This document shows, in pieces, positions 6,725 through 60,432 of a stretch of DNA of 64,000 nt. Origin of the DNA: Diplonema japonicum (lineage: Eukaryota > Protista > Euglenozoa: Diplonemea); contig OZ025712.1 in the NCBI GenBank assembly GCA_964019335.1, positions 310,001-374,000 of the forward strand. Reading direction: 5' to 3'. The notes below the pieces were generated by a model. It worked only from the letters and a program-made list of their open reading frames with translations, was not told the origin of the DNA and ran no database searches. A program made the translations under genes and the position numbers. The first letter of the stretch is position 1. Each line of letters begins with the position of its first letter.

Positions 6725-9700
6725 TCAACTGGCAAAAGCTTCCCCCTTAAAGAGCCTATCAGTAATGGCCGCTTCTTCAGCTTTGCTTAACGGCTTCGAT
6801 TCATGGCCGGGCTTAAGGTATTTATGCAAAAGCGCTTCCCTCTTATTTCGCGTGACCTCTATCCTGGCGTAGTACAAGTCCTTGTTCACTCTTGCATGTT
6901 CTTCCTTAGAAAGTCTCTTTGCCACGCTGGGAGTACCGCTTTGTCTGGCTATCAATTTGTCCATTGTTGCCTCCTTGCGTTGCACCGCTTGCTTGTGAAG
7001 ACGGTCGACGCTGGCCTCCATCCGTGCTGAGTCCATCTTCTCTCCCGCGACCTTAGCCTCGAGGAACCTCTTGCTTAGAAGGGATTGTTTCCGCTTCGTG
7101 ATCTCGATCTGCTGGGTGTACATGCGCTCCACAGCCTTCTCGAGCTCCTCTTTCGACAGTTTTTTCGTTTTTGCAACGGTGCACAGTTTCCCCCTCAGTG
7201 TCTCAAGTCTCTTGTTCCGTACCTCTGCACTGTGCGTGTGCAATCTTTCGGACATTCTTTGGATCTATTACGGTTTTTTTTTTTTTTTTTTTTTCCCCAA
7301 AAATATACCTCATCGGTCGTCAGCTTCTTCTCAGACCTTGCTGAGCATATTGGTGCCACGGGATCGAACGCAGCTTCGAGCCTCCATGGCTCAGACCGTG
7401 CATACCGCATAGGCAGTTGGACAGACAACGGACGGCCGACAACCTTTTTTTTTTTTTTTTTTTTTTTTTCTTTGCATTTTTTATACCACAGCTGAAGGGT
7501 CTGGTGTGACGGACATCGGGTCGTGGAGGGAGCTCTTCCCGTCTGCGCATCTCTGCGCGTGGGGGAACCCTCCTGCGAAGTCCAATATAACGACATCGTT
7601 GGCAGGGTGGTACTGGTTCGCAGCGTAGTTAGAGTGGTCGCTCTCACCCGCACCGCCGAACACGAACCCACGGCACTTCATGTCGTCCTCTGTGTCGGGG
7701 TCGATGTCGGAAGGGAAAATGTTAAGAGACACGTGTTGCCTTCCCAACAGCCCTGCAGGGACTGTCATCTCAAGGCGGCGCCACATCAAAGTATCCAGGT
7801 TCATGACATGGCACTGTGAGGAGTACTCGAGAAGACCTGTGCTCCCGCCGAACAGAATCATCTTGTTCTCGAAGACTTGTGCGGCGTGCCCCGACCGTGC
7901 TCCGGGCCGTTCGCCCATTGCCTCTTTCTTGTTCCATGTGCCGGCTGCGAATGTGTAGGACCACAGGTCATCCACCTGATCACCATCGGAGTTCTTCCCC
8001 CCGTGCACCCACATGGCATCGTTCCACACCACTGCTGTGTGGTTGATCACACCGTGAGGTCTGGGGCCTGAACCTTGTTTTCGTATCGGGACCCATTTCA
8101 TTTTTTTAAGGTGCAGCGTGTCGAGGGCGTAGGATACCCCGCCCTCCCTGTGCCCGCCGAAGATCCACAGCCTTCGTTCGTAGAGCACCGCCGTGTGGTT
8201 CTTGACCGCTGTGAGGTCTCGCTTGGGCATCTTGCTAGGGTGGAACAGAGCAGGGTCGTGAAGAACCTCCTTCGGAACCCTTGTCCACCTCTTGCTCTCT
8301 AAGTCCAACGACAATATGTCTGTGCAGTACCCCGTGGGGCCCGTCAGTTTGTTCAACGACAGGGGTGAGATGTCGCCCCTTGGCGACGAGGCACGCGAGG
8401 AGCCATGCCCATGCCCATGGTGGTCTTGCGCATTAAAGTTCGGGCCGAACCCCCCCAGCACGATCATGGTGCATGCGGGGTTCTCGTCTGGGTCGGACCA
8501 TGGGAGCCGTCCGTGCCACAAGGTGCATGTGTGCCCGTACCGTCCTGCCAGGGGACGCACACCAGTTGTGCTGAGCTTCTTCCACACAGCAGTGTTTATG
8601 TTGAACGCGTAGACAGAAGGGTCCAGCTCGCTGTTCCTACCGGACCTGCCACCGAAGAAGTACGCGTTGACGCCAAGCTGGACAGACGCGTGGCGCTCGC
8701 GTTTGGAAGGAGCAGGGTTGCCACGGGACTTCAAGATATGAACGGAGTTGGCAGAGGACGTTGAGTTTTCTGCTCGGCGCATCAACGCAGCGGAGTGGTT
8801 GGTCCTGCGAGCACTGGGGGCGGAGGCGGGGCGTTTCGGCACGATCTCACGGGAGGTAGATCGGGAGGTGGCGCGGACCTTCTCTTCGGCACGAATCGCA
8901 CGCTCCCTTTCGCCCTCCAACAATTGTTCCAACTGCTTTATGCGTGACTCCATGGCAGCGGTGCCTGTTGCAGGGAGTGGCGAGACGTCTTGAGAAGCCC
9001 TTCCACTGCTTTTCCGTTGTGCGGGGCTTGGGCTGCTTGAGTCGGTCCCAGTGTCATCCGCGGGCTCTCGTATCGTCACGCTGGGCCTTCGTTTTTCCTT
9101 CTCTTCTGGTTTTTCCTTCTCTTTAGCTTTTTCCCGTTCGCTTTGCATGCTGTTCATTAATTGTGTCTCTGCTGCTATTTTCTCCTCGACCACACCGTCT
9201 CTCGCAACCTCCTCAGATGTTATAAGTACGGATATCTTCGCCTTGTGTTCTTTCTCTGCTTCTTGCTGTTTTTTTCGTGTTTCTTCCTCTGCCGCCCGTC
9301 GGGAATCTTCTTCTTCTTTTTCCTTTTGCCTTCGGACGTGTTCTTCTTGCTCCTTTCGTTTTCTTTCCTCTTCATCTTGCTCTGCCTGCCGTTCTCTTCG
9401 TTCCTTCTCGCGTTGTTCCTCTTCTGCCTCGTCAGCCTCGCTGTCGTCTGGCATGGTGTAGTCATCTTTGTACTCACTGCTCACAACCGTCCCATTCAGG
9501 TCCTTTTTAGGTTCTTCTTCTTTCGGATCGTGTTCTTCTGGAGTCACCACTTCGGGTTCGGGTGTCGCCGGCTTTGATTTCTTCTTGTCTTTCTTTTTTT
9601 TCTTGTCTTTTTTGCTGGTTTTCTTCTTCTTTGTGTTCCGTGGGGTATCCACAGAGGTGCTGTGGGAGAGCTCGGACGGCGTTGCCGTTGTCTTCCCGTC

Positions 9701-10435
9701 GCCGGGGTTCGAGGGGTATGAGAAGTCGGTGTTGCCAGAAAGCCTTGAGTCTTGAGGCTGCAGCGCGTTTAATGCGTCTTCTTGCTCTTGATTCTCATTC
9801 TGCATCCTTTCAAGGTTTGACTTGAGACGTGCTATGAGCGCGTCGTCACCTTCATCATCATCATCATCATCATCGGAGTAGAGGGGGTCGTCGTCATCGG
9901 GCTTTGGGGCTGGGGGTGGTATGGATGCGTTGCTTCCGTGGGTTTTGGCGTCTTTTTTCTTGGATTTTTTTGATTTTTTGGATTTCTTGCCGGAGGAGGA
10001 AGATGTTCGCCGCCTTGTAGCGGTGCCGGGGCGTTCTAGTGTGGGTGTCGCACTGCCACTGCCGCCACTTTGGCCGCTTCGGCCGTTCATCACTAAAGCA
10101 ACTTCATTGTCGTCGTCATCATCATCCAAGCCGCCTAGGCCTGACTGTGGCCGTAGTTGTCTTGCGGAGGTAGGGCGGCCGCTGTACGTTCCCGCAGTTG
10201 AGGGTCGAGAGACAGCCCTGTCGACGTCGTCCGAGATGCCGTCCTCGTCATCTTCATACACGCCAAGTTCGTCTTTTAGCTGTTGTTCGTACTGCGCGGC
10301 TTGCTTGCTTTTCTTTTTCTTCTTGTCGGACGGGTCCTTGCCGCTCTTTTTGGGTTGTTTCGGTTCCTCTACCACCACGGGCTGTTCGAAATCGTCTTCG
10401 AACTCATCCTCGTACGACCCGTAGCCGTCACTCAT
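6725..10435 (-). CDS. Kelch-repeat protein with long charged N-terminus; 3 exons (introns 7444-7486 and 7265-7308)
   Basis: Kelch motifs (GRYGHT, NHTAVLY..LWIFGG, ARSGHAA..MILFGG). Removing two GTAT..AG A-tract introns joins ORFs 7481-10435, 7195-7671 and 6725-7255 in frame. Confidence 0.8.
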
Positions 10436-10713
10436 TTCCCTGTGGAGTGGCTTGACTTATAGATGCAAATTAAAATTTTCAGGGGGGGGGAAAGGAAACA
10501 CTTTCAAAAAAAGAACTTGCAACAAAAGTCGCCTTTTTTTTTCTTCTAAAGGGGGAGGGGGGAAATGTGCGGGTAAGAAATGGGGGACGAAGGGAGACAA
10601 AAAAAATGGGACAAAAGAAAAATGGGGAAAGAAATGAGGAGGAAAAAAAAAATCTAAAAATCTATCCCCCTTTTCAAAAAAAGAGGCTCTTCTCCCCCCC
10701 CACCCCGTCACAT

Positions 10714-12170
10714 CTAAGAGCTCTGGTCCTTCATGTCCAAAAAGCCTTCGGTCGCAGCATCGTTGTAGTCTTTAATGAGACTCTCCACAACCTGTTCGCT
10801 GTCCTTGAACTCGTCGAGGTTTTCCTTGAACGGGTCGAACTTCTTGTAGTTCGCAACGAACGCCTGGTTGGCCATCATTTTCTTGTACTGAGTAAGCGTC
10901 CTTTTGAACAAGTTCGAGATCGATGTGTGGTTCGTAAGCATAAGACCAGATACCCTGTGCGCGGTTTCAATGTAAGGCGATTTTTTCGACAGCGCAACTT
11001 GACAGCCAGCAGGGCCCCATGGGATGAAACGCAAATCTCTACTTTGCAAGCGAACAAGTGACTGGTGAACCTCTGAAGGATCGACATCCCCTTGAATAAT
11101 ACATTGAATGGACATATAAGCCCCGCCATGTGTTGTTACAGAAACCATGTTGTTCTTGGGATTCAACAAACGCGTGATAACATCTAGAACAGAAGTTTTT
11201 CGCACTCTTGAAACAGCGCCCTGACCACCCACTCTTCCAATCGGGTCGAGCGATAAAGGTGTGTATCCTGTCATTAAGAAATGCGTTCTTGGGAGAGGGA
11301 TTAAAGATGCGATTAAATCCTCCAACCCGTTGTTCATGTATCCTGGGTATCGCAGAGTAGCAGTCGAAGCGGCCATGACCGTGGCTACAAGTTTGTTGAC
11401 CTGAGTTTGACCGGGGTTGGAACCCTTGAAGGTGTCTTCGGCGATTCTGTACAGAGCGTTGTTGTCCAGGACTACCACGCAGTCCGCGCATAGAGTAAGT
11501 CTTTTCATGGTTAGGAGTGAGTTGTACGGCTGCACCACTACGTTGGCTTCGCCGCCTCTTTCGGAGTTTGCTGGGAAAACCGAATACGTCTGGACCAGTT
11601 TCTTCGGCCAGTGGTCCGACATATTTTCCAACAAAAACGATCCAAGACCCGACCCCGTCCCACCCGCAATAGAGTGCGTCATTACAAAACTATTTTTTTT
11701 TTTTTTTTTTTTTTTTAAAATACCCTTCGAAAGAGTCACTTCCTTCTACCTCTCTCGAGATCATATCATTCAGCGTTTCAGAGATTTCATGGCCGATTGA
11801 AAAACTGTAATTATTATTTATTATTATTTTTTTTTTTTTTTCTTTCATACCCATTTGCCCAGTTGTTTCCCGCCCCGGAGCCTTCGTTGTGGACGTATAT
11901 ATTTTCAGGGTTAAACAGATTTGTTTGGGGGCCTTTTTTTATATTGTCCACGACACCGGGTTCGAGATCGATTAGTAGCGCTCTAGGGACGTACTTGTGG
12001 TCGTCAGCTTGGTAGAAAAACACATCTTTGCAGTCACCCGCTGTGTCGGTCGCGAAGGGCTGCAGGGTCCCATCATCACCTATGCCATGTTCCAAACACA
12101 GTTGTTGCCAGAATGAACTTCCGACTTGGTTCCCGCACTGGCCGACCATCAGGTTGCATAGTTCTCTAGG

Positions 12171-12173
<3 letters not shown>
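10714..12173 (-). CDS. TUBG: Gamma-tubulin; 3 exons (introns 11805-11850 and 11690-11723)
   Basis: [36 protein letters not shown]. Splicing restores [34 protein letters not shown]. Confidence 0.97.
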
Positions 12174-12204
<31 letters not shown>

Positions 12205-12718: not shown

Positions 12719-12740
12719 TTACTGCTGGGTCGTTTCCCTG

Positions 12741-12773
<33 letters not shown>

Positions 12774-14397
12774 TTTCTTACTCTCACAAATTTCAAAAAA
12801 AAAAAAAAAAAAAAAAATCATACTTGGGTTTAACATCAGGCACATACACATGAAGCCTTTCCATAAGGTGTACCTGGGTCTGGGTTAGTTTGGCAAGGTA
12901 GTTGGTCATCAGCAGGTCCTGTGTGGTGCTGTTGTACAGCTTGTCAAACGACTCCGGTGAGACGGGGGGCACGGACTGGAGGAGTGAAAGCAGCTCCCTT
13001 GCAACCTTCGGGTTTTCCTTCTCCTTCCCATCAACAATTTTGTCGGCGTAGTCAAGGGAGTTCTTGATAACAGCTTGGATTTGGAGGAGGTGCTTGTGAA
13101 CTTGTTCAAAAGGCGCACGGTCATTCGAGGTAACTGACGAAGCAGCTCCGGACCTAATGGTGGGCCGCTTCTGGCACGACTGCAGCTCATCAGTTTGAAC
13201 CTCGGGAAGGCCATCAACAACAGGCTTCAGAATAATATGTCTGTTTGTAATCATTTGATCAAGCGCGAGCTTCTCGACGGGCGAATGGCACTGTATTTTT
13301 TTTTTTAATTTTTTTTTTTTTTTTTTTATTTCACTCTTCGTCATTTTCTTCACTCACTAGGGGCCTCATTATTTAACGCGAAATGGCCATTATTTAACGC
13401 GAAACGGCCATTATTTAACGCGAAATCGCCATTATTTAACTAGTTAAATAATGAGATTTTGCAGTTAAATAATGGCCCTTCAGAGTGAAAAAATGGGTCT
13501 TGTCGTGGAAAAAAATGCACCCAACCCCTTGAAAAATTTTTTTGGGGTGGGGGTATTTTGACTATTTTTGGCCATCTGAGGCCATTCCAGCCCTTAAAAG
13601 TGGGAATAAGTGCCTTACTTCCCCTTTAAATGCCACGGCGAAATAGCTACCCTGTATTACCTTAGGAAAATCCCCAAAAAGCTGACCTGCGTGAAAAAAA
13701 ACAGCAGTGAAAGCAGTGAAGAGTGAGTGACTCAAATGACGAAGAGTGAAATAAAACGACTTACTTGCCGCCAAATGAGCCATTATTTAACACTCGTTAC
13801 CCGTTTTTTTGCACTCGGGCCCTGCGGGCCCTCGTGCAAAAAATTCGGGAACTCGAGTTAAATAATGACTCATTATTTGTTGGCAATAAATAGTTATTTT
13901 TTTTATAATACCTTCCATTGGAATGGAATCTCCTTAAAACAGTCCGGGACAGTCTTCTCGCCAAGCTCTACATGGGACAGGATGAAACATTTCGAGTTAA
14001 GCGTACCGTTCTGAAGGGACGTGTCCACAAGGAGGTTGACGGAGGAGCCTGTCTTGATGTATTGCTGGTATTGTTTGTGCAGCGCGCGGGAAATAACAGG
14101 GTTGTGCTTGTTTGTGTACCACCCGACCAGCCTGTCCTTTTGGTAAATTTTGCGGTGCAGTTCCAGCATCTGTTTCTGGAAGACCTGGTCGTAGTGGAAC
14201 CCGGTGCCCTCCTTGGTGTGGTGTTTCACGGGCACACAGCATTTGATCTCCAGCACACCTCCCACGGTGCTCCCCAGCAACGCACCGTACACCTCGTTTG
14301 CTGATTTACCGCTGCTGGAGTCGTAGTCCCTCCTTGTAAAATGGTCAAGGATGCACATGGGCACCAGGGGGTCGATTACTATGCTTGGGGTTGACAT
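12719..14397 (-). CDS. EIF3F: MPN-domain protein, eIF3 subunit F-like; introns 13291-13911 and probably 12738-12823
   Basis: ILDHFTRR, VYGALLG, LVGWY, LVDTSL and C-terminal QDLLMTNYLAKLTQTQ. Splice junction FQWK|CHSPVEKLALD is in frame. Confidence 0.85.
13324..13895. mobile_element. Intronic palindromic, non-autonomous transposon-like element
   Basis: ~22-nt inverted repeat (tttatttcactcttcgtcattt / aaatgacgaagagtgaaataaa) bounding 13324-13756, 20-nt tandem repeats ccattatttaacgcgaaa at 13367-13440, and a ~135-nt hairpin at 13759-13895. Confidence 0.6.
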
Positions 14398-14621: not shown

Positions 14622-15509
14622 TCACCACCGGCACAATAATGACTCGCCTTCCTTCGGAAGCTTCCGCACCAATTTGCTCATAAAAAATCCAACGTTGGGG
14701 CCGCAAAGAATCCCGTCGACTTGTTCTCTCTGCCGGTTCAGTTCCATGTCGCGGTGCCGCCTGCTCGAAGCGGCCACCGTCCGCCTGTCGTTGATAAATG
14801 TTTTCAAATCAGCGATCGTCGGCTGCCTGTGCTCTGCAGGTGCCTCGTGTACATCAAGGAGCCTGCGTGTTTCCTCTCTAACCCCATTTTCAAGAATTTG
14901 TTTTTTCTTCACGTTTCGAAGGCAGGCTCGACGCCGGGGACGAGAAATGGGTTTTGCGTTCACCTTTGTTTTTTTTGGTTGTTCGCACGATTCTTGTTTA
15001 CCATCGACATCGCGGTTCAACAAATACGAATAGTATATGTTGTTCACACTGCCCAGTACGCGAAGCACCACCGATTGCCCGATTAAGTTGTTTGGGAAAA
15101 TTGCAAACGCGAGAAAATTAGACAACGGCTTGAACAGGTAGGATACGCCCTGTGCCTCGAAGAAATCCGCTGAGACCTTCTGCTTGACATCTTCCCAACT
15201 ACGGGTCTGTAGGTATCTGAAGCCGCCCATGGACACAGCCCGCAGAACAGGTGCGAAGACGATTTGGTTGACACTAGTCTTTCCTGCGGCGATCCATAGT
15301 TCGCCTCCAGATGGGAACATGACGTCCACGGCGTAGTGGCGGACGAATTGTGTCATCCCTTGGAACGCGACACCGCTCCCCGTGAACAACGCAGCTCGTT
15401 CCCAATCCGTTTCCTTCTTGCCCTCGATCCACTGCGCGCAGAGGTCCGCCCCCAAACTAAACCCCGCATTCACCACCAAGAACCCCCCGAGGTTGACCGC
15501 GATGTCCAT
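14622..15509 (-). CDS. Mpv17/PMP22 family membrane protein
   Basis: GADLCAQWIE..DWERAALF, KTSVNQIVFAP, WEDVKQKV..DF. Confidence 0.8.
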   Translation of the reverse strand: MDIAVNLGGFLVVNAGFSLGADLCAQWIEGKKETDWERAALFTGSGVAFQGMTQFVRHYAVDVMFPSGGELWIAAGKTSVNQIVFAPVLRAVSMGGFRYLQTRSWEDVKQKVSADFFEAQGVSYLFKPLSNFLAFAIFPNNLIGQSVVLRVLGSVNNIYYSYLLNRDVDGKQESCEQPKKTKVNAKPISRPRRRACLRNVKKKQILENGVREETRRLLDVHEAPAEHRQPTIADLKTFINDRRTVAASSRRHRDMELNRQREQVDGILCGPNVGFFMSKLVRKLPKEGESLLCRW

Positions 15510-15634
15510 TTTTTTTTTTTTTTTTTTTTCCTAGAAAAAAAATTTCTTTGGAGAAATATAGGGGGAAAAAAAAAATCTACAATAACAAAAAGAAAGGGGG
15601 AAAAAAAAACTATTCTTTTAAGGTATGCGTTTCG

Positions 15635-17841: not shown

Positions 17842-18732
17842 TCACGCCATCTCCACGCTGATAGCAGTGGCCTCGCCACCACCAATGCAGAGAGATGCGA
17901 CACCACGGGACTTGCCCTTGGCACGGAGCGCGTTAAGAAGGGAAACGACGATCCTGGAACCAGAGGACCCGATGGGGTGGCCGAGCGCAGTGGCACCACC
18001 GTGCACGTTGACCTGCTCGCGGGGGATGGAGAATTCCTTCATGGCGGCCATGGTGACGACAGCGAAGGCCTCGTTGATCTCCCACAGATCGACATCCGAA
18101 GCCTTAAGACCCTGCTTCTCAAGAAGCTTGGCGATGGCGGGGGCAGGGGCAGTGGTGAAGTACTTCGGTGTCTGCGCGTGCTGGGTGTACCCAGTGATCC
18201 ACGCGATGGGTTCAATCCCAAGCGCCTTCACCTTCTCCTCTGACGCCACAATGAGTGCAGACGCACCATCGTTGATGGAAGAGGAGTTTGCTGCTGTCAG
18301 GCTGCCGTTCTTGTCGAAAGCGGGTCTTAGCGATGTGATCTTGTCAGGGCGGGCCATGCCAGGGCCTTCGTCCTGGGACACTACGTTGACCTTGCCCCCA
18401 CGGCCCTTGACCTCAACGGGGGCGATTTCCCAGTCGAAGACACCGCTTGCCTGTGCGGCCTTCGCCATCTCCAGGGACTGCAGAGCGTACTCGTCCTGCT
18501 GTTCCCTGGTGAATCCGAACTCCTTTGCGCAGAGCTCACCGCAGTTCCCCATGTGCACGTTGTCATACGGGTCCCACAGCCCGTCGTGCACCATGGCGTC
18601 GATCGCCTTCTTGTCACCCATGCGGTGCCCCGCCCTCGCGTCCGGCAGCAGGTACGGGATCCTGCTCATGTTCTCCATCCCACCCACAAGGACAGCGTCG
18701 TTGGCACCTGCCTTGATCGAGTCTGGGGTGGT

Positions 18733-18764
<32 letters not shown>

Positions 18765-19183
18765 CCATTCATACCACCGCCCATCATGATGCACTTCATC
18801 CCAGACCCGCACACCTTGTTCACGGTGGTGCAGGGCAGCGAGTTGTCGAGTCCGGCCTTGATGACGGCCTGCGAAGGTGATAATTGATTGATTGGAGGAT
18901 TTCTTTTTCTCCCTTTAATACCTGACGGGTGGGGGCCTGCCCAATACCGGCAGACACAACGTTTCCGAAGAGCGCCTCGTCAAGCTCGGCAGCGGGGAAT
19001 TTGGACTGCTCCAGGGCAGCTGGGGGGTTTTTTTTTTTTTACAATAGATTTCTTTTTTATTTCTTCCCCCACCATACCATTGATAGCAGTGGCAGCAAGG
19101 GCAGGCGCGGGAACACCGGCAAAAGCACCGCTGAAGGCACCCATAGGGGTACGCTTCGCAGCGACGATGGCAAGACGGGACAT
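17842..19183 (-). CDS. Acetyl-CoA acetyltransferase (thiolase); 4 exons (introns 19020-19077, 18869-18921, 18723-18774)
   Basis: [51 protein letters not shown]. Three GTAT..AG introns restore the frame. Confidence 0.95.
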
Positions 19184-20753: not shown

Positions 20754-23700
20754 CTAATAATGTTTACGAATGTTCTTCGGCGTCGATGAATCAATAAATT
20801 TAAGACCTGAGCTGGACCCAGACGGAGTAGCGGAATACCGAGCCCCAGGTCCCCCACCCGTGCCTGTCCCCTTCGGGGTTGTGCTCCGCCCGTAAACTGC
20901 AGAAGCTAACAAAGATGACGTAGAAGTTCTAGACCGACTGGTAGCCTTTTTTTTTTTTTATTATTTATTTATTTATTTTTTTTTTAATACCCTTGGTTTC
21001 GGTCCCTGTCTCTGCGAAGTCTCAGAGAGTCTCGCTCCCTTCTGCAGCCTGGTGCCCAACTCTTTGGTTCCAACAATTCCCTTTTTAAGGTCCTGCGGTA
21101 GAACCTCCACGTTAATGAAGCCCTCGTCGGCGTCCTTCAGCAAAGGCGACTCATGTGAAGACGGGTCTGTGGCCATTGGGGATTCCTTCGGGTGCTGCAA
21201 GACAAGCGGACCTACAGTATCTACATGAAGTACAGACCGCCTTGGTGAGTTGGCACGGGGAGAAGAGGTCCTCGACCGAGGTGAACCACCTGCTGACGAC
21301 GACGCCTTTCGCTTCACAAGCTTGTCGAAGAGGTTTAGAGAATCGTCATGTTTTTGGCTGAAGTGTTGCGGTGACGAACCGTGGTGCATTTTTTCATAGT
21401 CAGTAAGATATTTTCCTGCAATGGTGTTCACTCTCTCCATACTTATATCCAAGTGATGCTTCACCGATCGGACCGATTCTGTCATGTAACCTGAACTAAT
21501 CTTCATGACACCGCTCCCAGTAGACTGTGCCAACGCCCGTTTGTAGATAGGGTCTTTGGCGAAGCATCTGTGGGTTTCTTTCACACTCTCCTTCACAGCC
21601 TTCCTCAGGTCCATGATGGACTGAACAAGCTCTGCTCTTGTGAACACGATGAACTCGATTTCCTCTTTTTGCTTGACGACCTCCTCTTCGATCTTCTGGA
21701 GCGTGTCTTCCTTTTGCTTCAGCAAATCGATTTTTTCAACGGCCTCGCGTTCCTTTTCCGCGAGCGTTGCTGTTAGATCCTTCACCCTGGCCTCCATTTT
21801 TTCATCATTGCCGGCTTTCAACTCTTCGTGCTTCTCGGTGAGTGCGGTGTGTTCGATGCTGAATAGTCGCAGTTTTTCCAAAGTTTCTTGCTCGTTGTCC
21901 TGAGCACGGGATAAACGGGCTTTTAATGAAGACAGTTCGCCTGTTTGGCTGTTCAAAGCGGTGTCGGCTTTCTTAAGGTTGGCCACTGACGATGAATGTC
22001 GTAGTAAAACCTCGTTTTCCATGTCTTTTAGCTCGGCGATCACCTTCTTCTGCCTGTCGGCCACATCTTGCAGGTTCATGATGTCGCTCTTCGCGTCTGC
22101 CAGTTGTTTCTTCAACCCGTTTAGTTGAGCCTTAAGCTCATCTTGTGTGGTTGTGTCCCCTTCGAATCTCACCTTCAGCCTCTTAAAGGCGCGGTTGCTG
22201 TCCTCTAGATCTATCGTGAGGTTCTCGATCGTTGTTTCCATTCGTTGTTTCTCTGCGTTCAGGGAGTCGAACGTGTCTTCAAACTGCACTGCCTGTGCCG
22301 CTGCTTCCTTCAGCCGTGCCAACCGGCTTTCCATCGCTTCGTGTTCCACGGTTTTGTTCTTCATCTGGTTCTCGAGGCGGGACTTCTCCATCTCCAGCAT
22401 TTCAACGGTGCACTTCAGCTGCATGGCTTGCTGTGTTTTCTCGCTGTTGGCCTCCTCCGCCGCTGCGATTCTCTCCTTAAGTTGTGCCACGCGTTTGTCG
22501 GTTTCCTCTTCCAGTGCCTGTAGCTGTCTTGTTGTTGTGTCCAGTTCCGTGTTGAGCCTGCTGTTTGTTGCTCTGAGGTTCCCTGTTTCGTCAGCGTGTT
22601 CCGTTCCTTGTTTCTTATGTTGTGCGCGAAGTCCTACCAATTCATTCTCAAGTGTAGCTGCATTGTCGACAGCCTGATCACGCTCCCTTGTGCAGGTGTC
22701 CATGGTGGACGTGTACAGCAAGGATTCCTCCCTTAGCCTCGTGTGCTCCTCACGCCACTTCCTCAGCTCTTCATCTTGCTCGGCGGTCTTCTTAACAAGT
22801 TGCTGGTTCTCTAAGTCTTGTACATGTGCCTTGTCGGCCGCCTGTTGCAGCTGCCTCTTGTATTCTGCGTGCACTGCATCAGCCTCATCTATCTTCCCTG
22901 AGATTTTCACTTGAACCAAACGGAGCTCGTTGGCCTTGTTCTCCATGTCCTCGTTCACGATTTGAAGTTGTCTTTTCAAGTCAGCGATCTGTCCGTCCTT
23001 CCTTGCCCTCTCTTCCTCGAGCCCGGAGCTGAGATCTTTCATAGATGCTTTGTGTCTGGCTCTGTCTTCTTCGAGTGCCTCGAGGCTTCTGCCATATAAC
23101 GTTGTGAGTCTAGACAGCTCCTCTTGAGCGCCTTGCAGTTCGAGAGTGAGTTTCGAGACGTTGCTTTCCAGCTTGCTTGAAGTGAGGGTTTCTTCATCGA
23201 TTTGTGCGGTTGCTGAGGCAAGTTTTTCCTGAAGCCTGGCACGCTCAACTGCAGATGATGTCTTCAGCTGCTCCACTGTGGCGTCGTGGCGTGCTTTCAG
23301 CGCGGTCAACTCTTCTTTTGCTTCTTCCAGCAATCTGTTGAGGCCTGCGATCTTCTCGTTGAGTGCTTCCACCTCATGCCCGCTCATGTCCTTCGCACGG
23401 TTCACGGCCTGTATCAAACCTTCCTCGTAGCCTGCCTTCTCCTGTTCTCTGAGCGATGTCACCCTTCGCAGTTCCCCTTGCGCCATCATGCAATCGTCCT
23501 TCACCCTTTCTATCTCTGTCTGGAGCCTGTTGTTTGCTGAACGCAGCTTGTCCTCCGAGTCTGTTGCGTTCTCCAGTTTCTTCCGAAAGGTCTCGATGCT
23601 GTTCTCCAAGCGCTGTATCTCAGAGTCGTCAGACGACTTATTGCGGTTGGCACGGACCGCTGCGTCTGCTGCGGTATCCAACTCGAGGCGCAGGGCACGA

Positions 23701-24980
23701 AGTTCCTCTCGCAGCTCCTTTTCTTGAGCCTGGTGCTCGCTTTCAAGCTGCGTGCCGGTTTTCTTTGCGGTTTCGAGTGCGGCTTGCAACTCCTTGATCC
23801 GAACCTGTTGCTCGTTTTCGCGCTGGGATCTGGTTTTTTTAGAGGCTTCGAGAGCGATCTGCAGCTCTTTATTCTGAGCCTCATGGTCGCCATTCTGTTT
23901 CAACGCTGCGTCAAGTGCCGTGTGCAGCTCGTCTAGCTGTCTCTGGTTGTCTGTGTCTAGCGAGGCGCTAGACCTGCGTGCCTTATCCAGCTCAGCACGA
24001 AGCTTGTCAGCATCACGCCGCACTGACGAGAGTGTCTCGCTCCTGCTCTTCAGCTCCTCGTTGAGTTCCTCCATTTGGCCGGCCAACGGATTGTCGTCGC
24101 CCGGCGCGTCTTGCAGCTGGAATTCCGCCTTCTGCAGGTTGGTGCGTAGCAGCATCAGAGTTCTGTTCATTTCTTCCTTCTCAAGGGTGAGGCTCTCTAC
24201 CTGTCGCTCGGCCGCTTCGCACTGTGTCCTAAGCGCCGCCAGTTGTGAGTCGTCCACACGGGAGGAGTTGGTGCCTTCCTGTGTCATGCTTTTGGAGATG
24301 ACCGCCTCGAGGGATTTGTTCTTCTCTTGCAAGTGAGCGATGTTGGATTCCGCGTCTTCGAGCTCGATGGCGAGCTTCTGGATCTCCTGGTCATGCTTGT
24401 CCATCAGAGAGTTCTCTTTTGAGGACCACTCGTCCGACCACTCCACTTCGCGTTGCTGCAAGCGGGCCTGTGATTGGGACGCCTCTTGCTTGTAGCGTTC
24501 AGCCTCTTGCTTATAGTGTATGGCCTCTTGCTCACAGTGGTCGGCCTCTTGCTTGCAGCGTTCAGCCTCTTGCTTGTAGCGTTCAGTCTCTTGACTGTAG
24601 CGTTCGGCATCTTGTTTGTAGCGCTCAAGATCTGCTTGGTCTTGCTTCGGGTGCTGAAGGATGAGCTGCGCTTGAGTATTGACCAGCTCCCTGCGTAGCA
24701 TTTGGAGCTGCTCTGTGGCGTCGTCGAGCTGCATCTGCAAACAGCTGCAGTTCCCGCACACCACCGGTTGGGCTGGGGGCAGCTGGACAGGAGGAGGCAG
24801 TATGGCAACAGGGACGGGCTCCGGGGCATCTTTCGGGCTCCGCATCCGTGTTGGGCTCGTCTGCACCTTCACAGGCACCCACACAGCAGGAGTGGTGTGG
24901 CTCCCCGGAGACGGACTTTCCACCAGCCTGCCATCGAGCCTTGTGGGCGATCTGAACCTACTCTCTCGCGACCATGGCAT
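20754..24980 (-). CDS. Long coiled-coil protein; 2 exons (intron 20946-20990)
   Basis: ~1330 aa heptad-rich ORF. Removing the 45-nt A-tract intron adds an open 63 aa final exon (ATSRSRT...RKHY*). Confidence 0.8.
24480..24630 (-). repeat. 21-nt coding tandem repeat (ERYKQEA heptads)
   Basis: About 7 degenerate copies of gcctcttgcttgtagcgttca. Confidence 0.8.
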
Positions 24981-25025: not shown

Positions 25026-25063
<38 letters not shown>

Positions 25064-25131: not shown

Positions 25132-26607
25132 TCATCCTACGACGCACCTGTCCTTGACCATGGAGATGACCCTCAGAAGGCGGTTCTGGTCTTCGGGATC
25201 GGTGCACCGGTTTCGCGCGCTAAGAAGCGCTTTAAACACCTTTGCCTCACCGATATCGACGCACTGCTCTTGGTAGTTGAGGAGAAGGAGAAGGATGGAG
25301 GTTACATTCGTGATCAGCGAGCCTTCAGGGGGGAAGGTGTGGAGCACTGTGGTGAGCATGGCAGGAACCCGTGAGTGTCGAAGCGAGACAAGGCGATCCG
25401 CATTATAAGCGGCGGGGGAGTAGGTCTGTTCCTGAATCTCCCCACGGCAGAACTCACCGAGGAAAGACAGGATGTCGTTCACAATTGTTTCGCTTTCTGT
25501 CTTGGTTTCCTCTAGTTTGGAACGGTTTTGGGGGAGCTGTATATACCCCAAGGTCATCCGAAGCTTATCGACAGCGAGCTTTGGAATCTCTGCTTGGGCA
25601 ACATCAAGCGGCCAACGCTGCGCGAACGCTTGGCAAGCCTTCAAAACACTCCCGACGGTGTTCCCATGAAGGAGCATGCCTTCCCTGTTGCTCCACTTCA
25701 ACTTTCGCAGCTCCGACGCGAACTTAATAATCCATTTTTTCTTCACCGCTTCTGCCAGAAACACATAGTCTTCCACAGCATACTTCATAGATACAATATC
25801 GGAAAAGGCCATCAATGTGATGATTCGTTTGTGTGAAGCTAATACGTCGCTTGCGTCCGGTTCTTCCGCGTGCTTCGCGTACTTGTTTATCCGGTTCAGA
25901 TCGGCGATTCCAATCATTTGAAGTTTGTCTGGAAACCTCTCTAGAACTTGTTGGAGGTACTCATTGAATGTGAATATGGTAGCACCACCGGTGATGAACT
26001 CCGGGTGTTCGTCAACAACCGTCCTCCACCACTTCACCAATGGGAATCGGGATATCTTTTGCAGGGATGGGTTGTCGGTTCCCGCGCCCTTTAGCATCAT
26101 GGTCAGCAGCACCATTCCGTGTGCAAAACCAGAAACGGCAGCGGGTGATTTGTGTTTTGAAGCACGGTTTATAAGATTTGCAACTGATACGATATGCCGC
26201 TCCACAAGGTCAGGGGTTTTCTCAGGTATCCACTGAACAGTTCTGGAAAGGATGGAACACGTGGGTTTCATCAGTTCAAAGGTTCGTGTTTCGCATAGGG
26301 AGAAGAGGTCATCTAAGGCCCTGGGGTTGTGGAACACCCACGATCCCCACCCGCAGAAATGGCACGCAAGCTCGCTGAAGTTTTCGTCCGGTTTCGGGTC
26401 TAATAGTGTCAGAGATTTTTCGAGCCTGTACAGCAGGTTTATCATCTCGTCCTCGTCGCCTTTCAAAATCGTTTTTTTTATCCGTTTCCTTTCGAGGCTG
26501 AACACCTTGTCGAGTTGTGAGGTGTCCGGTTCCCTCATGGAGCCGATCCACTCCGCTTCAAGCTCCCATCGTGTTTTAACCAAGCACCTTAAGGTCCGTC
26601 GTAACAT
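25132..26607 (-). CDS. Hypothetical helical protein, probably mitochondrial
   Basis: 491 aa ORF starting MLRRTLRCL, a typical euglenozoan mitochondrial presequence pattern. Confidence 0.75.
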   Translation of the reverse strand: MLRRTLRCLVKTRWELEAEWIGSMREPDTSQLDKVFSLERKRIKKTILKGDEDEMINLLYRLEKSLTLLDPKPDENFSELACHFCGWGSWVFHNPRALDDLFSLCETRTFELMKPTCSILSRTVQWIPEKTPDLVERHIVSVANLINRASKHKSPAAVSGFAHGMVLLTMMLKGAGTDNPSLQKISRFPLVKWWRTVVDEHPEFITGGATIFTFNEYLQQVLERFPDKLQMIGIADLNRINKYAKHAEEPDASDVLASHKRIITLMAFSDIVSMKYAVEDYVFLAEAVKKKWIIKFASELRKLKWSNREGMLLHGNTVGSVLKACQAFAQRWPLDVAQAEIPKLAVDKLRMTLGYIQLPQNRSKLEETKTESETIVNDILSFLGEFCRGEIQEQTYSPAAYNADRLVSLRHSRVPAMLTTVLHTFPPEGSLITNVTSILLLLLNYQEQCVDIGEAKVFKALLSARNRCTDPEDQNRLLRVISMVKDRCVVG

Positions 26608-26730
26608 TTTTTTTTTTTTTTTTTTTTTTTTTCACTGGGAAAATATGAGGATAAAAATATATAAAAAAAAAGGAGGGGGAAAAAAAAAAAGGAAGAGAAA
26701 GAAAAACACTTCCACCCCCCCATTTTGTTT

Positions 26731-28790
26731 TCAACTGTTTTCCACCCTCGGTTCACCTGTGCCATTTACGTTATGCACCGCCTCGGGTGGCGGTGGCGGG
26801 GGTGGTTGTGAATCGTCAGGATCACGGCCTGCTTCGGGTGCTGGAGACGCTGGTTGGATAGCCTGCTGCTGCTCCATGCTCGTTTGCTCGGGCTGAGTCG
26901 TCATTACTTCGATCGGAGTTACCTCTGTAATCACTTCTTGAGGCATTACGTTTGACCCCTGCAAAAATTGTGTTTTAATAGGGCGGCTGTTCCCGTGAAT
27001 ATATTACCCTCCCCCCTCTTTTTTTTTTTGTTTCTCCGAAACTCAGCTCTCATAATCCATTTTTTATGCTTCAAGTATGACCAGGCATCACAAGTGAGAT
27101 AAAGCGGGTAAACAGGGTCCCAACATGGAAGGGGGTAAACCCCCTTGCAAGGAAAATATTTCCCGCCATCAATGCCCATGAAGAACTTGGTGTGAATGTA
27201 CAATTTTATCATCATCGTTTCTTTTTTTTTTTCCCCCTTTTTTTTTCTTTGGAGTTTGCCGTGTTCTCCCCTCCCCATTAAAAAGGCCACGGTTTTAAGG
27301 GCAAGCCCACTTCAATCTTTTGATTCTTCCCAAATAAAGAACAAAATCTCCTCTCGACACCAAAACTCAGCTCTCATAATCCATTTTTTATGCTTCAAGT
27401 ATGACCAGGCATCACAAGTGAGATAAAGCGGGTAAACAGGGTCCCAACATGGAAGGGGGTAAACCCCCTTGCAAGGAAATTATTTCCCGCCATCAATGCC
27501 CATGAAGAACTTGGTGTGAATGTACAATTTTATCATCATCGTTAAACGGAGGGAGGAGATCAGCTCTAAATATCGATGGCAGATTGTTGGGAAAGAATGA
27601 AGAAGAAAAAAAAAAAAAAAAAAAAGCCCCTCCCCCAAGATAGCCCCTTCCCGAATCTTAACTCAGCTCTCATAATCCATTTTTTATGCTTCAAGTATGA
27701 CCAGGCATCACAAGTGAGATAAAGCGGGTAAACAGAGTCCCAACATGGAAGGGAGTAAACCCCCTTGCAAGGAAATTATTTCCCGCCATCAATGCCCATG
27801 AAGAACTTGGTGTGAATGTACAATTTATCATCATAGTTAAACGGAGGGAGGGGGGAGGAGGAGATCAGACAGCAGATTGTTAGAAAAGAAAAAAAAGGGG
27901 GGTAAAGCCCTCCTCCCCCCTAGGGCTATGCTGGCATGGAAACGCGTTTCCATGCATTTTTTGAAAAAAAGGGAAACGGAAACGGATACGGAAACGGAAA
28001 CGGAAACGTTTCCTTATGTTTCCTTAAGAAGGAAGCCGTTTCCATAAGAATTTTGAAAAGTATGGAAACGGAAACGGGAACGGAAACGGAAACGTTTCCA
28101 CGTTTCCTGCCAGCATAGCCCTAGGGGGGGTCATAAGGGGGTCGTTATTTGCCCTTTTTCAGGCTCTTCGCCAAGGGCATTTTGGGCCCTTAAAAAAACT
28201 GTAACCACCCCAAAAGTGCCCACAAATCACCCAAACCCCCGTTTCCCGATGGTTTCCGGCCCCAGAAGTGCCCAGAATCATGTTCTAATTTTGGGGCCCC
28301 CGTTTGGTACTTTTCCTATGTAATCCTAGGGGCCCCTATTTTATGTTCCCTAGGATTACATAGGGAAAGTACCAAACGGGGGCCCCAAAATTAGAACATG
28401 ATTCTGGGCACTTCTGGGGCCGGAAACCATCGGGAAACGGGGGTTTGGGTGATTTGTGGGCACTTTTGGGGTGGTTACAGTTTTTTTAAGGGCCCAAAAT
28501 GCCCTTGGCGAAGAGCCTGAAAAAGGGCAAAAAGTGGCCCTTTTTAAGGACCATATGACCCCCCCTACCCCCCCCCCCCCCCCCAAGATAGCCCCTTCCC
28601 GAATCCTAACTCAGCTCTCATAATCCATTTTTTATGCTTCAAGTATGACCAGGCATCACAAGTGAGATAAAGCGGGTAAACAGAGTCCCAACATGGAAGG
28701 GGGTAAACCCCCTTGCAAGGAAATTATTTCCCGCCATCAATGCCCATGAAGAACTTGGTGTGAATGTACAATTTTATCATCATCGTTAGT

Positions 28791-28826
<36 letters not shown>

Positions 28827-29747
28827 AATAATAATAATAAAACACACACCTCTGTGTTGGTGTAACCCATCCCATCTGACATTGTCATGATGGGTGATGC
28901 TGCAGCAGCAGCTGCAGCAGCGGCGGCGGCTGCCGCAGGTGGCATAAACATCTGGCTGCGCATGTTGAGCGGTGTGGCCATGAACTGCGGCATCATCGAG
29001 GGAACGAAACCGGGGTACCGTGAAGCCCATGCTTGCTGGGACATGGTGGACATAGCAGACTTCTCGGCCTTTGTAGGCTGCGCGTACTCCTTTTCGATCT
29101 CCCCCTTAGCATGTTCCACCAGCTCAGGCGTCCCTATAACATAAGCCGCCTCTGTGGCTGACGCTTCCCGTGAAGGGATGCGGAGGGTCACACCGTACTT
29201 CGTTTCAAGCTCCTTCCGTTTGATACCACCCTTTCCTATCATTCTTGCAAACTTCTCTGACGTTACGTTTAGTTTCAACTCAACTGCCTCAGGTGCGACA
29301 GGTGCAGGTGTTGGAAGGGCAGTGTGCTGTACAGCGGGTTTAGGAGCCTCGAGAACAGGTGGTGCGGGGGGTCCTGTTGACTCGGTGTCGATGTCCCATA
29401 AGCTTTTCTTCGGTTGTTGTTTGGTTTGGGAATCCATGTCCCTCCCGGGGGAGATGAGCTGTGGTGGTGGTGACATGCTTCGTTGTGGTCTTCTTCTTTG
29501 AGGATACGACTGTCGTTTGTCCCGCCTGCCTTCTCTTCTTGCTTCCCTTTCGAACTCTCTGTCGCGTCTGTACAGCTTTCTGTCCCTGTCCCGTTCCCTG
29601 TCCCTGTCGCGGTCGTAGCTTCCCGTCCGTCTTCGGTACCGCTCGCCCCTTGGGTCCCGCTCCCGTGTGTCGCGTATCCTTTCCCTTTCCCTTTCCCGTT
29701 CCCTGTCCCTGTCACGGTCGTATCGACGATCCCGTTCATATCGGCTG

Positions 29748-29784
<37 letters not shown>

Positions 29785-32120: not shown

Positions 32121-32156
<36 letters not shown>

Positions 32157-45971: not shown

Positions 45972-46037
45972 TTAGATCAGGCCCCTTTCGGCCTTCATTT
46001 CAAGGCGGAGCTTGGCGACAGTGGCGATGCTCTCCCT

Positions 46038-46076
<39 letters not shown>

Positions 46077-46497
46077 CCAAACACCTGGCCCTCCTCTCCG
46101 CGTGCTCGGTGGGGTACTGGCAAAGGGTGCCGTCGGTTGCCCACCTGAAACGAACCTCAGACTCTGTCTCGTCGTACTCGGTCCCATCGTATCTCGAATT
46201 GTCAGAAATCCAAGGACCCATTTCGCTGTCTACCCTGCGGTACCCGAAGTCGTAAAAGACGTAAGCGGCCTCAATTGGGATGAAGAAGAAGATAATCCAC
46301 CCTGACCTCTCCAGAATGGACCTCATGATCCCGTGGTGCCAGTATCCAAGGAAGTAAGGGTTAGCACCAAACTGCTTCGGCCCTGCTCCGTGTCTGGTAG
46401 AACAATCGTAGTTGCTGGTGAAAGTCCTCTTCTGGTTCTTTAGCCCTCTTGCGGCTCTTGCCGCCGCAGCACCAAGCCTCATGGTGACTCCAAACAT
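45972..46497 (-). CDS. Small putative mitochondrial membrane protein; 2 exons (intron 46036-46084)
   Basis: Presequence-like N-terminus, one TM, spliced end RAR|ESIATVAKLRLEMKAERGLI*. Confidence 0.65.
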
Positions 46498-47283: not shown

Positions 47284-48350
47284 TCACCCTCCAATCTTAA
47301 CCATGGGACGATTTTCGCCTGAATGGCTAGCCAACGTCTCAATAGTGTGCCCCCCGAGAGAAGCCTGTTTACCATCAACTATCTCTGAAATTCGTTGCAT
47401 GACATCTATGTCAGAAGCATTGGTCCGTAAGAGCTGGATTTTTTTTTTCTTTTTTTTTTTTTTTTTTTTTTCCATACTTGCAAGATACTTCTTTCGTTGC
47501 TATCGAACAAACACACTTTAACCTGACCGTCCGCAAGTAAGCGCATCCTGTTGCACCCACCGCAGAACTGTGATGTCATGGTGGTGATGAAGCCTACGGA
47601 ACCGACCCAATCATCACAAGAATATCGCTTTGAAACATCTCCCCGTTGCCCCTGTATCCCCTGAAGCTTCACATCTAAGCCTTGTTCGATAGAGTCGAAA
47701 ATCGACATCCAAGGAACCAGCATATCTGACGACCAGGAGTTAGAGTTGAAAGGCATGTACTCGATGAACCGCACCTCGATGGGCAACGTTTTCGCAAGAT
47801 TGGCAAAAGCTACAACTTCGTCATCGTTTTGCCCACGCATCACTACACAATTCACCTTTGTTGTAAGCCCTGCATCGATCGACTGATGCAGTGCTTTAAA
47901 AACCTTTTCAAACCCATTTCTCCGCGTGATGAACTGATATTTCGCCTCCACAAGGGTGTCCAGTGATATATTTACATGGGTTACACCGTGCTCCTTCATG
48001 ATAGGGATTTTTCTTGAAAGTTTGATGCCGTTCGTGGTGATGCACAGCTTGTCTAAGTCGAGCTCTCCCAGTCCTTGGATCACGTTGTCGAAGTCTTTCC
48101 GAATAAGAGGCTCGCCTCCGGTTAGCCGGATTTTCTTGACTCCCATGTCCCTGAATATTCTGCTAGCTTTTAATAGTTCACCTGTCGTCATCAAATCCTC
48201 GTTTGGGGTGAGATCCACGCCTTCGCTTGGCATGCAGTACTGGCATCTCAGGTTGCACCTCTCGGTCAGACTAATCCGCAGGTAATCGTGAAACCTGCCG
48301 AATGTGTCGGAGAGCAACGATTTTGTCACGCGGGGGGTAGGGGGCTTCAT
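47284..48350 (-). CDS. moaA: GTP 3',8-cyclase (MoaA/MOCS1A/CNX2); 2 exons (intron 47434-47477)
   Basis: YLRISLTERCNLRCQYCMP, RLTGGEP, FCGGCNR. Splicing yields the diagnostic C-terminal RPMVKIGG. Confidence 0.95.
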
Positions 48351-58218: not shown

Positions 58219-58325
58219 TTTGGTCTTTTTTTTTTTTTTTTTTTTTTTGCTCGGAGTAAAAAAAAGAAAGAAAGAAAGAAAAAAAATTCTATTACAGATC
58301 TCTATTATTTTCTCCCTTTCTTCTT

Positions 58326-59163: not shown

Positions 59164-59202
<39 letters not shown>

Positions 59203-59538: not shown

Positions 59539-59601
59539 CTAGATAACCCTGGTTCCCTGCCCGGTCATAATTTGCCCCGGTATGTTCATGTGAGTACCAG
59601 A

Positions 59602-59635
<34 letters not shown>

Positions 59636-60432
59636 TTGTAACATACCCCACTGGACCAGCATCGAACTGACCATAAGGAGCTCTGATGGGCGTTCTCTTG
59701 CTCTCAAGCGAGGCCCAATTCTCCATCACGATTCTTTCTTCCTCAGAATCGGTGAAAGATTTTTCAGTGGTGTCCTTGTGCGCCTCCGACAACCCAACCC
59801 CGTGAAGCGCCGATGACCTGAGCGAAGTGATCTCCTCCTCCGTAAGGTCACGCACCTTTTCACAAGGAACCCCCGCCCACAGCTCCCCGCTGGGGATAAC
59901 CATGAATTTTTGAACAACAGAACCCGGTGCGACAATAGACTGCGATTCAATACGAGCACCGTCCATCACTACACTACCCGCTCCCACAAAAACATCATCG
60001 GCAATAGATGCACCAGTAATGGTGCAGCCAGGCTCGATGGTCACATGGCTCCCAATTGTACAGGAGCTGCCTGGCGAACATCTGACAACACACCTGTCCT
60101 GAATTGTAGTGTTGGCTGCTATGCTCACATCTCTGCTATCCGCTCTGATAACGGTTTGGTAGAACACACCGACTTTCGAGCCCAAGTGCGCCGCACCGAT
60201 TACATTTGCATTGGGAGCCACGAAACAGTCGTGGTTCACATAAGGGGTTCTTCCCCCAAAGGGGTTCACCCTCCTCCAGCTTGTCACTCGTTCTTTATGC
60301 GTATTGGTACCTTGGAAGATGCATCCTATTCTATCAAGCTGTGTATGTTTTTTTTTTTTATTGGGGGTGATATACCTGAAACGCAGCCTCCCTGCACGCG
60401 AACCCAAACCCTCTCGAGAAATGGTTCAGCAT
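59539..60432 (-). CDS. Gamma-carbonic anhydrase-like subunit (mitochondrial complex I type); 3 exons (introns 60339-60375 and 59603-59646)
   Basis: Spliced N-terminus GFACREAAFQ|LDRIGCIFQG resembles plant gammaCA; FVAPNANVIG, hexapeptide repeats, IPSGELWAGVP. Confidence 0.88.

Follow-up and report, generated by a model that had tools for sequence, protein, structure and literature searches.

The genome of the diplonemid Diplonema japonicum carries very short introns that begin with GT, end with AG and are filled, in large part, by a single run of adenines. We studied them in a window of 64,000 nucleotides (nt), positions 310,001 to 374,000 of contig OZ025712.1, where we placed 19 of them. In our view these are probably ordinary U2-type mini-introns, whose body serves as a spacer and as a source of branch adenosines rather than as a specific purine-tract signal. 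The core finding, that D. japonicum has A-rich mini-introns, is already published: Thakur et al. (2025, RNA 31:1826, PMC12621601) described introns supported by RNA sequencing (RNA-seq) in six diplonemids, including 10,131 introns of D. japonicum (98.33% GT-AG, median length 41 nt). In their data the donor reads (G)/GTATG, the acceptor is CAG and YTRAY occurs in 13.9% of introns. A, and not U or C, is the commonest base of the tract region, which settles in the affirmative a genome-wide logo check that a sequence-only reading of this window had proposed. Regarding mechanism, the paper offers the logo and one discussion sentence, and says nothing past "a highly adaptable spliceosome". What we add is the head, run and tail architecture, the constraint on length, the coexistence of U-run and other introns, and a long intron that ends in A22-CAG. 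For the machinery, we add an intact GUAGUA in U2, a U1 that complements the donor, an SF1-type gene and a U2AF65 free of species-specific change.

The window is compact, with a G+C content of about 47%, and its genes lie almost all on the (-) strand. The nearest named proteins come from Diplonema papillatum (52-62% identity), and two EukProt transcriptome proteins match exons of this genome at 100% identity. Runs X1 and X2 contain close relatives whose exons are 96-97% identical. All 19 introns are on the (-) strand and measure 34-86 nt. Six are supported by RNA-derived data, five by the continuity of a protein profile and the remaining eight by reading frame or composition; half of these eight are weak calls (a pair in a KH-domain gene, 46036-46084 and 59603-59646). 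The list was assembled partly by eye, starting from the runs. Exons were searched singly against Pfam, and the returned proteins P0001, P0020, P0014 and P0015 were mapped back onto the DNA. The RNA-like data are contigs of run X7 over one 6-kb stretch, in which introns were called by arithmetic on record coordinates, with homopolymers masked in the read comparison. X7 is 100% identical to the window and resembles RNA: depth varies from gene to gene, and its contigs are without certain segments that the DNA run X8 retains. Three attempts at a dynamic programme over open reading frames (ORFs) and splice sites were dropped, as adjacent genes were joined via false introns in low-complexity spacers. 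A symmetric scan for A- or T-runs within ORF-joining GT..AG segments was left unused, since open frames of 60 codons abound in the homopolymer-rich spacers and made it too noisy. Likewise, an argument from the depletion of lengths divisible by three (1 of 19) was abandoned as ascertainment bias.

Two introns are absent from the X7 contigs. One is the 43-nt intron of the kelch gene at 7444-7486, GTATAAAAAATGCAAAG-A25-G, in which the end of the A-run is itself the acceptor. Here record 17 has 7 letters against 50 in the genome, a deficit of exactly 43 nt, and removal of the segment joins 990 open codons upstream to 82 downstream. The other is the 86-nt intron at 12738-12823, GTATGA-T23-...-A24-CAG, whose U-run lies towards the donor and whose A-run stands next to the acceptor. 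For 194 letters of the genome, record 21 has 108, a deficit of exactly 86 nt, for which this is the sole GT..AG placement. Four further introns lie in the Atg2 gene, to which the organism's own transcript-derived protein P0020 (2001 aa, 100% identical) fits only with gaps of 44, 56, 50 and 44 nt. These are intron 1 (32117-32160, GTAGAATTT-A30-CACAG), intron 2 (31977-32032, GTAGCGTGAAT-A25-CGAG-A12-TCAG, the sole GT..AG placement giving 56 nt), intron 3 (31797-31846, G/A-rich and without a run) and intron 4 (31554-31597, GTACGTGAAAG-A22-TGTCTCTGCAG). The transcript check of junctions that the sequence-only reading had called for thus came out in its favour for these six introns, in X7 as well as in P0020.

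Profile continuity supports five introns in two conserved genes. In gamma-tubulin, the Tubulin profile is matched at positions 2-81 in exon 1 and 112-189 in exon 3, and the 26-aa exon 2 spans the gap. Intron 1 of this gene (11805-11850, 46 nt) reads GTATGAAAG-A15-TAATAATAAATAATAATTACAG and intron 2 (11690-11723, 34 nt), which had been the example of the sequence-only reading, GTATTTT-A24-TAG. Exons 1 to 4 of the thiolase gene match Thiolase_N at positions 2-31, 34-65, 66-94 and 98-260, respectively. Its intron 1 (19020-19077, 58 nt) is A/G-rich and then A13-CCCCCCAG, intron 2 (18869-18921, 53 nt) is without an A-run and has the pyrimidine-rich tail TCACCTTCGCAG, and intron 3 (18723-18774, 52 nt) reads GTATGAATGG-A30-CCACCACCCCAG. 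The earlier proposals that the window holds frame-supported GT-AG mini-introns, and that their removal restores conserved genes, therefore hold for gamma-tubulin and thiolase by profile and for Atg2 by the mapping of P0020.

Among the eight introns placed by frame or composition, four have clearer reading-frame support. The 44-nt intron of the kelch gene at 7265-7308 (GTATATTTTTGGGG-A21-CCGTAATAG) separates 123 open codons upstream from 179 downstream, and unspliced the frame ends after 37 codons. Near the 3' end of a 1,350-codon gene, a 45-nt intron at 20946-20990 (GTATT-A10-TAAATAAATAAATAAT-A13-G) has 1382 open codons upstream and 63 downstream, and the unspliced frame ends after 5 codons. 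The 44-nt MoaA intron (47434-47477, GTATGG-A22-G-A10-TCCAG) lies between 322 and 49 open codons. The upstream exon carries Radical_SAM and Mob_synth_C; the downstream exon alone gave no Pfam match, nor did a Pfam search with the small exons of MoaA and Atg2. The first intron of a gamma-carbonic-anhydrase-like gene (60339-60375, 37 nt, GTATATCACCCCCAAT-A12-CATACACAG) follows 21 codons from the ATG at 60432 and precedes 250 more; unspliced, the frame ends after 5 codons. The candidate last intron of the same gene (59603-59646, 44 nt, GTATGTTACAAC-A31-G) is weak, with 20 downstream codons either way, and so is a 49-nt candidate at 46036-46084 (GTGTTTGG-A38-CAG), with 199 open codons upstream and 20 downstream. 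The two candidates of the KH-domain gene, at 29745-29790 (46 nt, GTATGATAAATTT-A28-CCCAG) and 29928-29962 (35 nt, GTATTC-A14-G-A13-G), are read from sequence and are frame-neutral together (81 nt). Once spliced, the frame has an Arg/Asp-rich exon running into the downstream RD/RE domain.

Could such segments be homopolymer assembly errors, or poly-lysine that is simply retained in the protein? Sequencing is error-prone at homopolymers, A-runs encode lysine in every frame, and some candidates, namely the KH-gene pair, leave the frame intact. Given that A-runs read as lysine, A-run introns with a length divisible by three would indeed be invisible to reading-frame logic. Against this, the RNA-like contigs are short by exactly the predicted 43 and 86 nt while the DNA run X8 keeps the segments, the transcript-derived P0020 and P0001 skip eight segments exactly, Pfam profile coordinates are continuous across five further segments, and eight D. 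japonicum introns have been confirmed by reverse transcription PCR (PMC12621601). We regard this explanation as exceedingly improbable overall, and for the 11 supported window introns it is refuted. For these 11, together with four introns of the U2AF65 gene described below, removal from mRNA is supported by RNA-derived data or by continuity at the protein level.

The anatomy of the introns is simple. All 19 window introns, and nine of nine verified introns of the U2AF65 and CDC48 genes, start with GT and finish with AG. In the window the donor is followed by a head of 0-12 nt, often ending in G, and by an A-run of typically 12-38; after the run comes a tail of 0-22 nt, closed by (C)AG. Acceptors are CAG in 13, AAG in four and TAG in two, many of them at the end of the run or no more than 5 nt past it. 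This bears out the claim that the run's end can be the acceptor, for which 7444 has RNA support. The interior is 73% A. Intron length is constrained: the median is 45 nt, 10 of the 19 introns cluster tightly at 43-46 nt, and the sum of head, run and tail stays at about 44 regardless of the length of the run (for instance 17+25+1, 9+30+5 and 11+22+11). Early AGs are bypassed, as at position 29 of the moaA intron, in a 21-nt option of a KH-gene intron and in the CGAG of Atg2 intron 2.

A sense A-run of at least 10 is present in 17 of the 19 introns, a share that overstates the genome. The window holds 208 A- or T-runs of this length. Inside the introns there are 21 sense A-runs and one sense T-run, compared to 98 and 88 outside (binomial p = 1.6e-5), a test biased by the way the list was made, since part of it was spotted by eye through the runs. 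We therefore also considered a less biased set. Five genes (Atg2, thiolase, gamma-tubulin, U2AF65 and CDC48) were selected because they are conserved or have a transcript protein, and together they contribute 18 introns. The median length of these introns is 44 nt, nine have an A-run of at least 10 and none a T-run of that length; the others are A-rich, CA-rich or have C-rich tails. The sense-strand A bias is thus real, yet about half of the introns have no long run, so that the earlier description of mostly A-run bodies fits the window better than the less biased set.

The last 20 nt of these 18 introns consist of A (63%), C (16%), T (15%) and G (6%). No YTNAY branch motif occurs within -50 to -5 in any of the 18, and no pyrimidine tract stands between branch and AG, the last 20 nt being 31% pyrimidine. 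A few introns do have short C-rich or U/C-rich tails, e.g. CCACCACCCCAG and TGTCTCTGCAG, and the proposed lack of a pyrimidine tract and branch consensus stands with this reservation. Given that most introns have neither, a classical U-rich tract cannot be what determines the choice of the 3' splice site. The A-runs of introns and spacers alike very often follow a short G-run of the same strand (GGGG-A(n), on the opposite strand T(n)-CCCC), e.g. at 7294-7298 and 18764-18768 and at loci L012, L014 and L019. This pairing suggests that purine tracts in the genome's non-coding DNA are subject to a strand-oriented process.

The pattern extends beyond the window. In the 62.5-Mb assembly (132 contigs; patterns counted on one strand, repeats excluded), GTATG followed by A12 within 10 nt occurs at 521 sites, against 130 in reversed order, and GTATG followed by T12 within 10 nt at 293, against 125. 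Along contig C1 the A12 sites are grouped by strand, 13 consecutive on (-) and then 8 on (+), as expected since gene arrays are one-stranded. Out of 20 sites fetched per kind, open frames of at least 60 codons are joined by 14 A12 and 8 T12 sites. One of the latter kind is a 67-nt segment in a NIPA magnesium-transporter gene, GTATGCGTC-T48-CGAATACATGACAG, which the orthologues P0014 (diplonemid) and P0015 (annotated, D. papillatum) bridge without a gap (...ANSVLLIGG|TINGLVCF...); seven more candidates join ORFs. Poly(U) introns thus exist in this genome, one of them shown by comparison with orthologues. Judging from the pattern counts and the joining of ORFs, they may make up roughly 1/4-1/3 of the homopolymer-bodied GTATG introns, an A-run to U-run proportion of about 70:30. 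In five sampled U-run candidates, one verified by orthologues and four by ORF-joining, the run never reaches the AG. A tail of 14-28 nt follows it and holds a branch-like GTAAC, CTAAT, ATGAC, TTAAC or TTGAC, 4-15 nt before the AG. Other bodies occur as well: an A-run is found in one of the five CDC48 introns, and one U2AF65 intron has G12/U8. Together with the NIPA T48 intron, the T12 sites and the less biased set, they establish that an A-run is not obligatory. As a side note, CDC48 has two tandem copies of its N-terminal domain (L054 9-650 and 738-1500, G000:C47). The upstream copy, which has 213 codons and is about 75% similar, runs out into low-complexity sequence and may be either a pseudogene or a partial duplicate.

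The early spliceosome of D. japonicum looks canonical, since genes for U1, U2, U2AF65 and an SF1-type protein are all present in the sequence. The 5' end of the U1 small nuclear RNA (snRNA) reads AUACAUACC and is exactly complementary to GGUAUGU, so that the GTATG donor is accounted for. U1 begins with AUACAUACCUG, one letter apart from the human start, AUACUUACCUG. Donors of the GTAT kind (GTATG, GTATT or GTATA) are found in 14 of the 19 window introns; the high frequency noted by the sequence-only reading is thus retained, and its analogy with the donor of the spliced-leader RNA is unneeded. U2 gave 11 matches, the best copies being full-length at about 140 bits (139 quoted), and reads ...AAGUGUAGUAUCUGUUC..., with the branch-pairing GUAGUA intact. 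The U1, U2 and signal recognition particle (SRP) RNA genes lie within about 3 kb on contig C12 (L002, G000:C12:799002-802241), and U1 and U2 are also neighbours, separated by some 2-9 kb, on no fewer than four other contigs (C14, C36, C75 and C81). An Rfam search of the whole window returned no match. A gene of the SF1/BBP KH type is found on C1 (43 bits against a cut-off of 30); the Pfam profile SF1-HH (PF16275) gave no match and was equally silent on the controls, and is thus uninformative.

The U2AF65 gene, on contig C19, is expressed and aligns with RRM1-RRM2 of human U2AF65 (E = 4.5e-18). The organism's own transcript protein P0001 confirms four introns in it: three measure 36-38 nt, and the fourth, 1,429 nt long, ends in CGAAC-A22-CAG. 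The long intron sits between RRM1 and RRM2 (L009 1681-3109; G000:C19:431680-433108), the other introns being mostly of about 40 nt, and has ORFs on both strands, the longest of 294 codons, which makes an inserted element possible. The RNP motifs are kept in RRM1. In RRM2, RNP1 reads KACCVFEF, compared to KGYAFCEY in human, and is missing the usual two aromatic residues. This form is common to all six other diplonemid sequences aligned, including Rhynchopus humris: the RNP motifs are identical in P0002, an 86% identical relative, and of an xCCVFxF type in more distant diplonemids. It is therefore not specific to D. japonicum. U2AF1/2 are reported present as well, U2AF35 through PMC12621601 alone. 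With canonical factors in place, loss or special divergence of U2AF65 or SF1, which the sequence-only reading had suggested looking for, is not the explanation.

As for the class of these introns, they have GT-AG ends and a U1-complementary donor, the supported ones are absent from mRNA and the machinery is present; a branch consensus and a pyrimidine tract are what they do not show. The lack of YTNAY does not bar them from the U2 type, because degenerate branch sites are known elsewhere. Neither the RTATCCTT donor nor the TCCTTAAC branch site of U12-type introns was found, the donors being GTATG, GTATT and GTATA, and only U2-type snRNAs have been reported (PMC12621601).

How, then, might the 3' splice site be chosen? 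Under the reading we favour, three features would define an intron: a donor that pairs with U1 (G|GUAUG), a length held at about 33-58 nt and a (C)AG acceptor. The interior would be low-complexity filler without a specific branch or pyrimidine signal, mostly an A-run and otherwise a U-run, CA-rich sequence or a C-rich tail, which would set the spacing, remain unstructured and contain few competing GU or AG. An A-run would be favoured as a spacer in that it is unstructured, has no G and places branch adenosines next to the acceptor; the AG at its end or a few nucleotides past it would then be used. In U-run introns, a separate short A-containing tail with a branch-like motif would be needed before the AG. 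We infer the position of the branch, the indifference to the identity of the tract and the reason for the preference for A, which could be either the supply of branch sites or the avoidance of U/C tracts that mark spliced-leader acceptors. Of the two alternatives that the sequence-only reading offered for a different 3' mechanism, the length-based one is thus consistent with the clustering at 43-46 nt, and the purine-tract-specific one is not supported.

Some observations weigh against the spacer reading. The only verified long intron ends in A22-CAG, and an intron of 1,429 nt needs no filler, so that this end looks like a 3' signal rather than a matter of spacing. A-runs very often abut the acceptor and U-runs in sampled candidates stop 14-28 nt before the AG (n=5); the positions of the two are therefore not interchangeable. 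In addition, the length argument is based on about 35 introns, and the RNP1 of RRM2 is without the usual two aromatics in all diplonemids.

These observations bring up the alternative that the A-tract is a true 3' splice-site signal, which replaces the pyrimidine tract and is read by an A-binding protein, or by a shifted U2AF65, that recruits U2. Its appeal lies in the predominance of A in the 20 nt before the acceptor, both genome-wide (PMC12621601) and in the 18-intron set, in the many acceptors at or within 5 nt of the run's end, in the A22-CAG of the long intron and in the unusual RNP1 of diplonemid U2AF65. We nonetheless consider it doubtful. Half of the introns in genes chosen regardless of their introns are spliced without an A-run, and introns with U-runs, C-tails, CA-rich bodies or G-runs exist. 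Moreover, the RNP form is conserved across diplonemids, including Rhynchopus humris, and this and other trans-splicing diplonemids are reported to have C-rich intron tracts (PMC12621601). A single long intron that ends in an A-run is weak evidence too, because 98 sense A-runs of at least 10 lie outside introns in these 64 kb.

Alternatively, the runs may have no role in splicing: slippage would fill non-coding DNA with them, and the sense-strand A bias would come from selection that purges U- or C-rich tracts with a following AG from within genes, where they would act as spliced-leader acceptor and polyadenylation signals. The near balance of A- and T-runs outside introns, in leaders, tails and spacers, would agree with this, and G- and C-runs are likewise common in this genome. 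The sole leader acceptor with RNA support, a probable CAG of the kelch gene at 10440-10442 (-), 5 nt upstream of the ATG, follows a C9/pyrimidine stretch and has no A-run before it. The match of X7 record 17 to the genome breaks off at 10440 and leaves 17 more letters unplaced, the leader itself not being seen. Furthermore, T27 and T33 sense tracts followed by AG (2640-2716 and 25027-25059), just upstream of the ORFs starting at 2647 and about 25028, look from their sequence like classical pyrimidine-tract leader acceptors. However, the U-run introns, perhaps 1/4-1/3 of the homopolymer-bodied GTATG introns, indicate that U-runs are tolerated inside genes, the C-rich tracts of other trans-splicing diplonemids are at odds with a purge, and a leader acceptor was seen at the RNA level just once. 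Tight clustering of length also points to selection on the intron itself. All in all, we find this explanation rather improbable.

Finally, there could be two 3' signals, U/C tracts for spliced-leader acceptors and A-tracts for cis-intron acceptors, the latter read by a poly(A)-preferring factor such as a re-tuned U2AF65 RRM2. If so, the cell could tell the end of an intron from the start of a gene. The A22-CAG of the long intron, the A-runs abutting acceptors and the C-rich stretch before the sole leader acceptor are compatible with such a division, which strikes us as quite unlikely.

Mini-introns with few signals are known from other eukaryotes. Those of ciliates and of the Bigelowiella nucleomorph are A+T-rich within A+T-rich genomes. 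They resemble the introns described here in being tiny and of narrow length, with few internal signals, a weak or no pyrimidine tract and a standard spliceosome; they differ in that the D. japonicum genome has about 47% G+C and its intron body is a strand-specific homopolymer, mostly of A. Yeast has a strict UACUAAC branch site and uses the first suitable AG past the branch, the pyrimidine tract being dispensable. A short distance from branch to AG, an unneeded tract and the neglect of AGs that come too close or too early would be common to both; unlike in yeast, YTNAY is found in none of our 18 introns, although U2 keeps GUAGUA. In kinetoplastids, cis- and trans-splicing need long pyrimidine tracts and cis-introns are almost absent; Kostygov et al. 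2024 is cited in this context. D. japonicum is likewise euglenozoan, with one-strand gene arrays, spliced-leader addition and a pyrimidine stretch before the sole leader acceptor seen, but its cis-introns are frequent and mostly without such a tract. The non-conventional introns of euglenids and hemistasiid diplonemids belong to the same phylum and are also short. However, they are without GT-AG and their ends pair, whereas the window introns have GT-AG and a U1-complementary donor, and direct reading of GTATG... and ...A-run-(C)AG reveals no mutual complementarity.

A textbook early spliceosome here removes thousands of introns without a branch consensus or a pyrimidine tract, making D. japonicum a natural test of the minimum sequence information required for 3' splice-site choice. 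The question is directly testable, as a chromosome-level assembly and RNA-seq exist. On the practical side, these introns will escape gene finders whose training relies on pyrimidine tracts, and A-runs in introns and leaders could prime oligo-dT libraries internally.

Homopolymers also mark the gene boundaries of the window. Sense A-runs of 13-32 nt lie directly, or up to about 15 nt, upstream of many start codons on the (-) strand (12173-12204, 15509-15529, 26607-26632, 45017-29, 37633-46 and 60445-59) and may be poly(A) leaders in 5' untranslated regions (UTRs). The A32 run at 12173-12204 abuts the ATG of gamma-tubulin and belongs, by its sequence, to a 5' leader and not to an intron. X7 record 19 continues beyond 12165 for another 28 letters, covered as deeply as the body of the mRNA. 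Of these letters at least about 21 are leader A's, and so at least part of this run is transcribed. Intergenic spacers can be very short, as at 2648-2713 (only 66 nt) and 10436-10500, where a C9 tract holds the end of the gamma-tubulin mRNA contig, at about 10487, and the probable leader acceptor of the kelch gene (10440) lies 46 nt downstream of that end.

A few other features deserve mention. At the end of the KH-domain gene (28754-28847), the ORF reads through T30 as poly-Phe, and the segment GTGTGTTTTATT...T30-ATGTTACTAACGATG... includes UACUAAC without a mismatch and may be either a 3' UTR or a U-run intron whose branch site resembles that of yeast. A 58-nt motif, GTACATTCACACCAAG..., stands downstream of this T30 and again at 27468 and 27764. 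Between 49391 and 50380 are three to four copies of a unit of about 300 nt, whose cores of 86-199 nt are 95-100% identical and which have neither long ORFs nor an Rfam match; the array may consist of small RNA genes. Lastly, a 21-nt unit is repeated seven times (79% matches) at 24481-24627, inside the 1,350-codon gene; being in frame, it encodes a protein repeat of seven residues.

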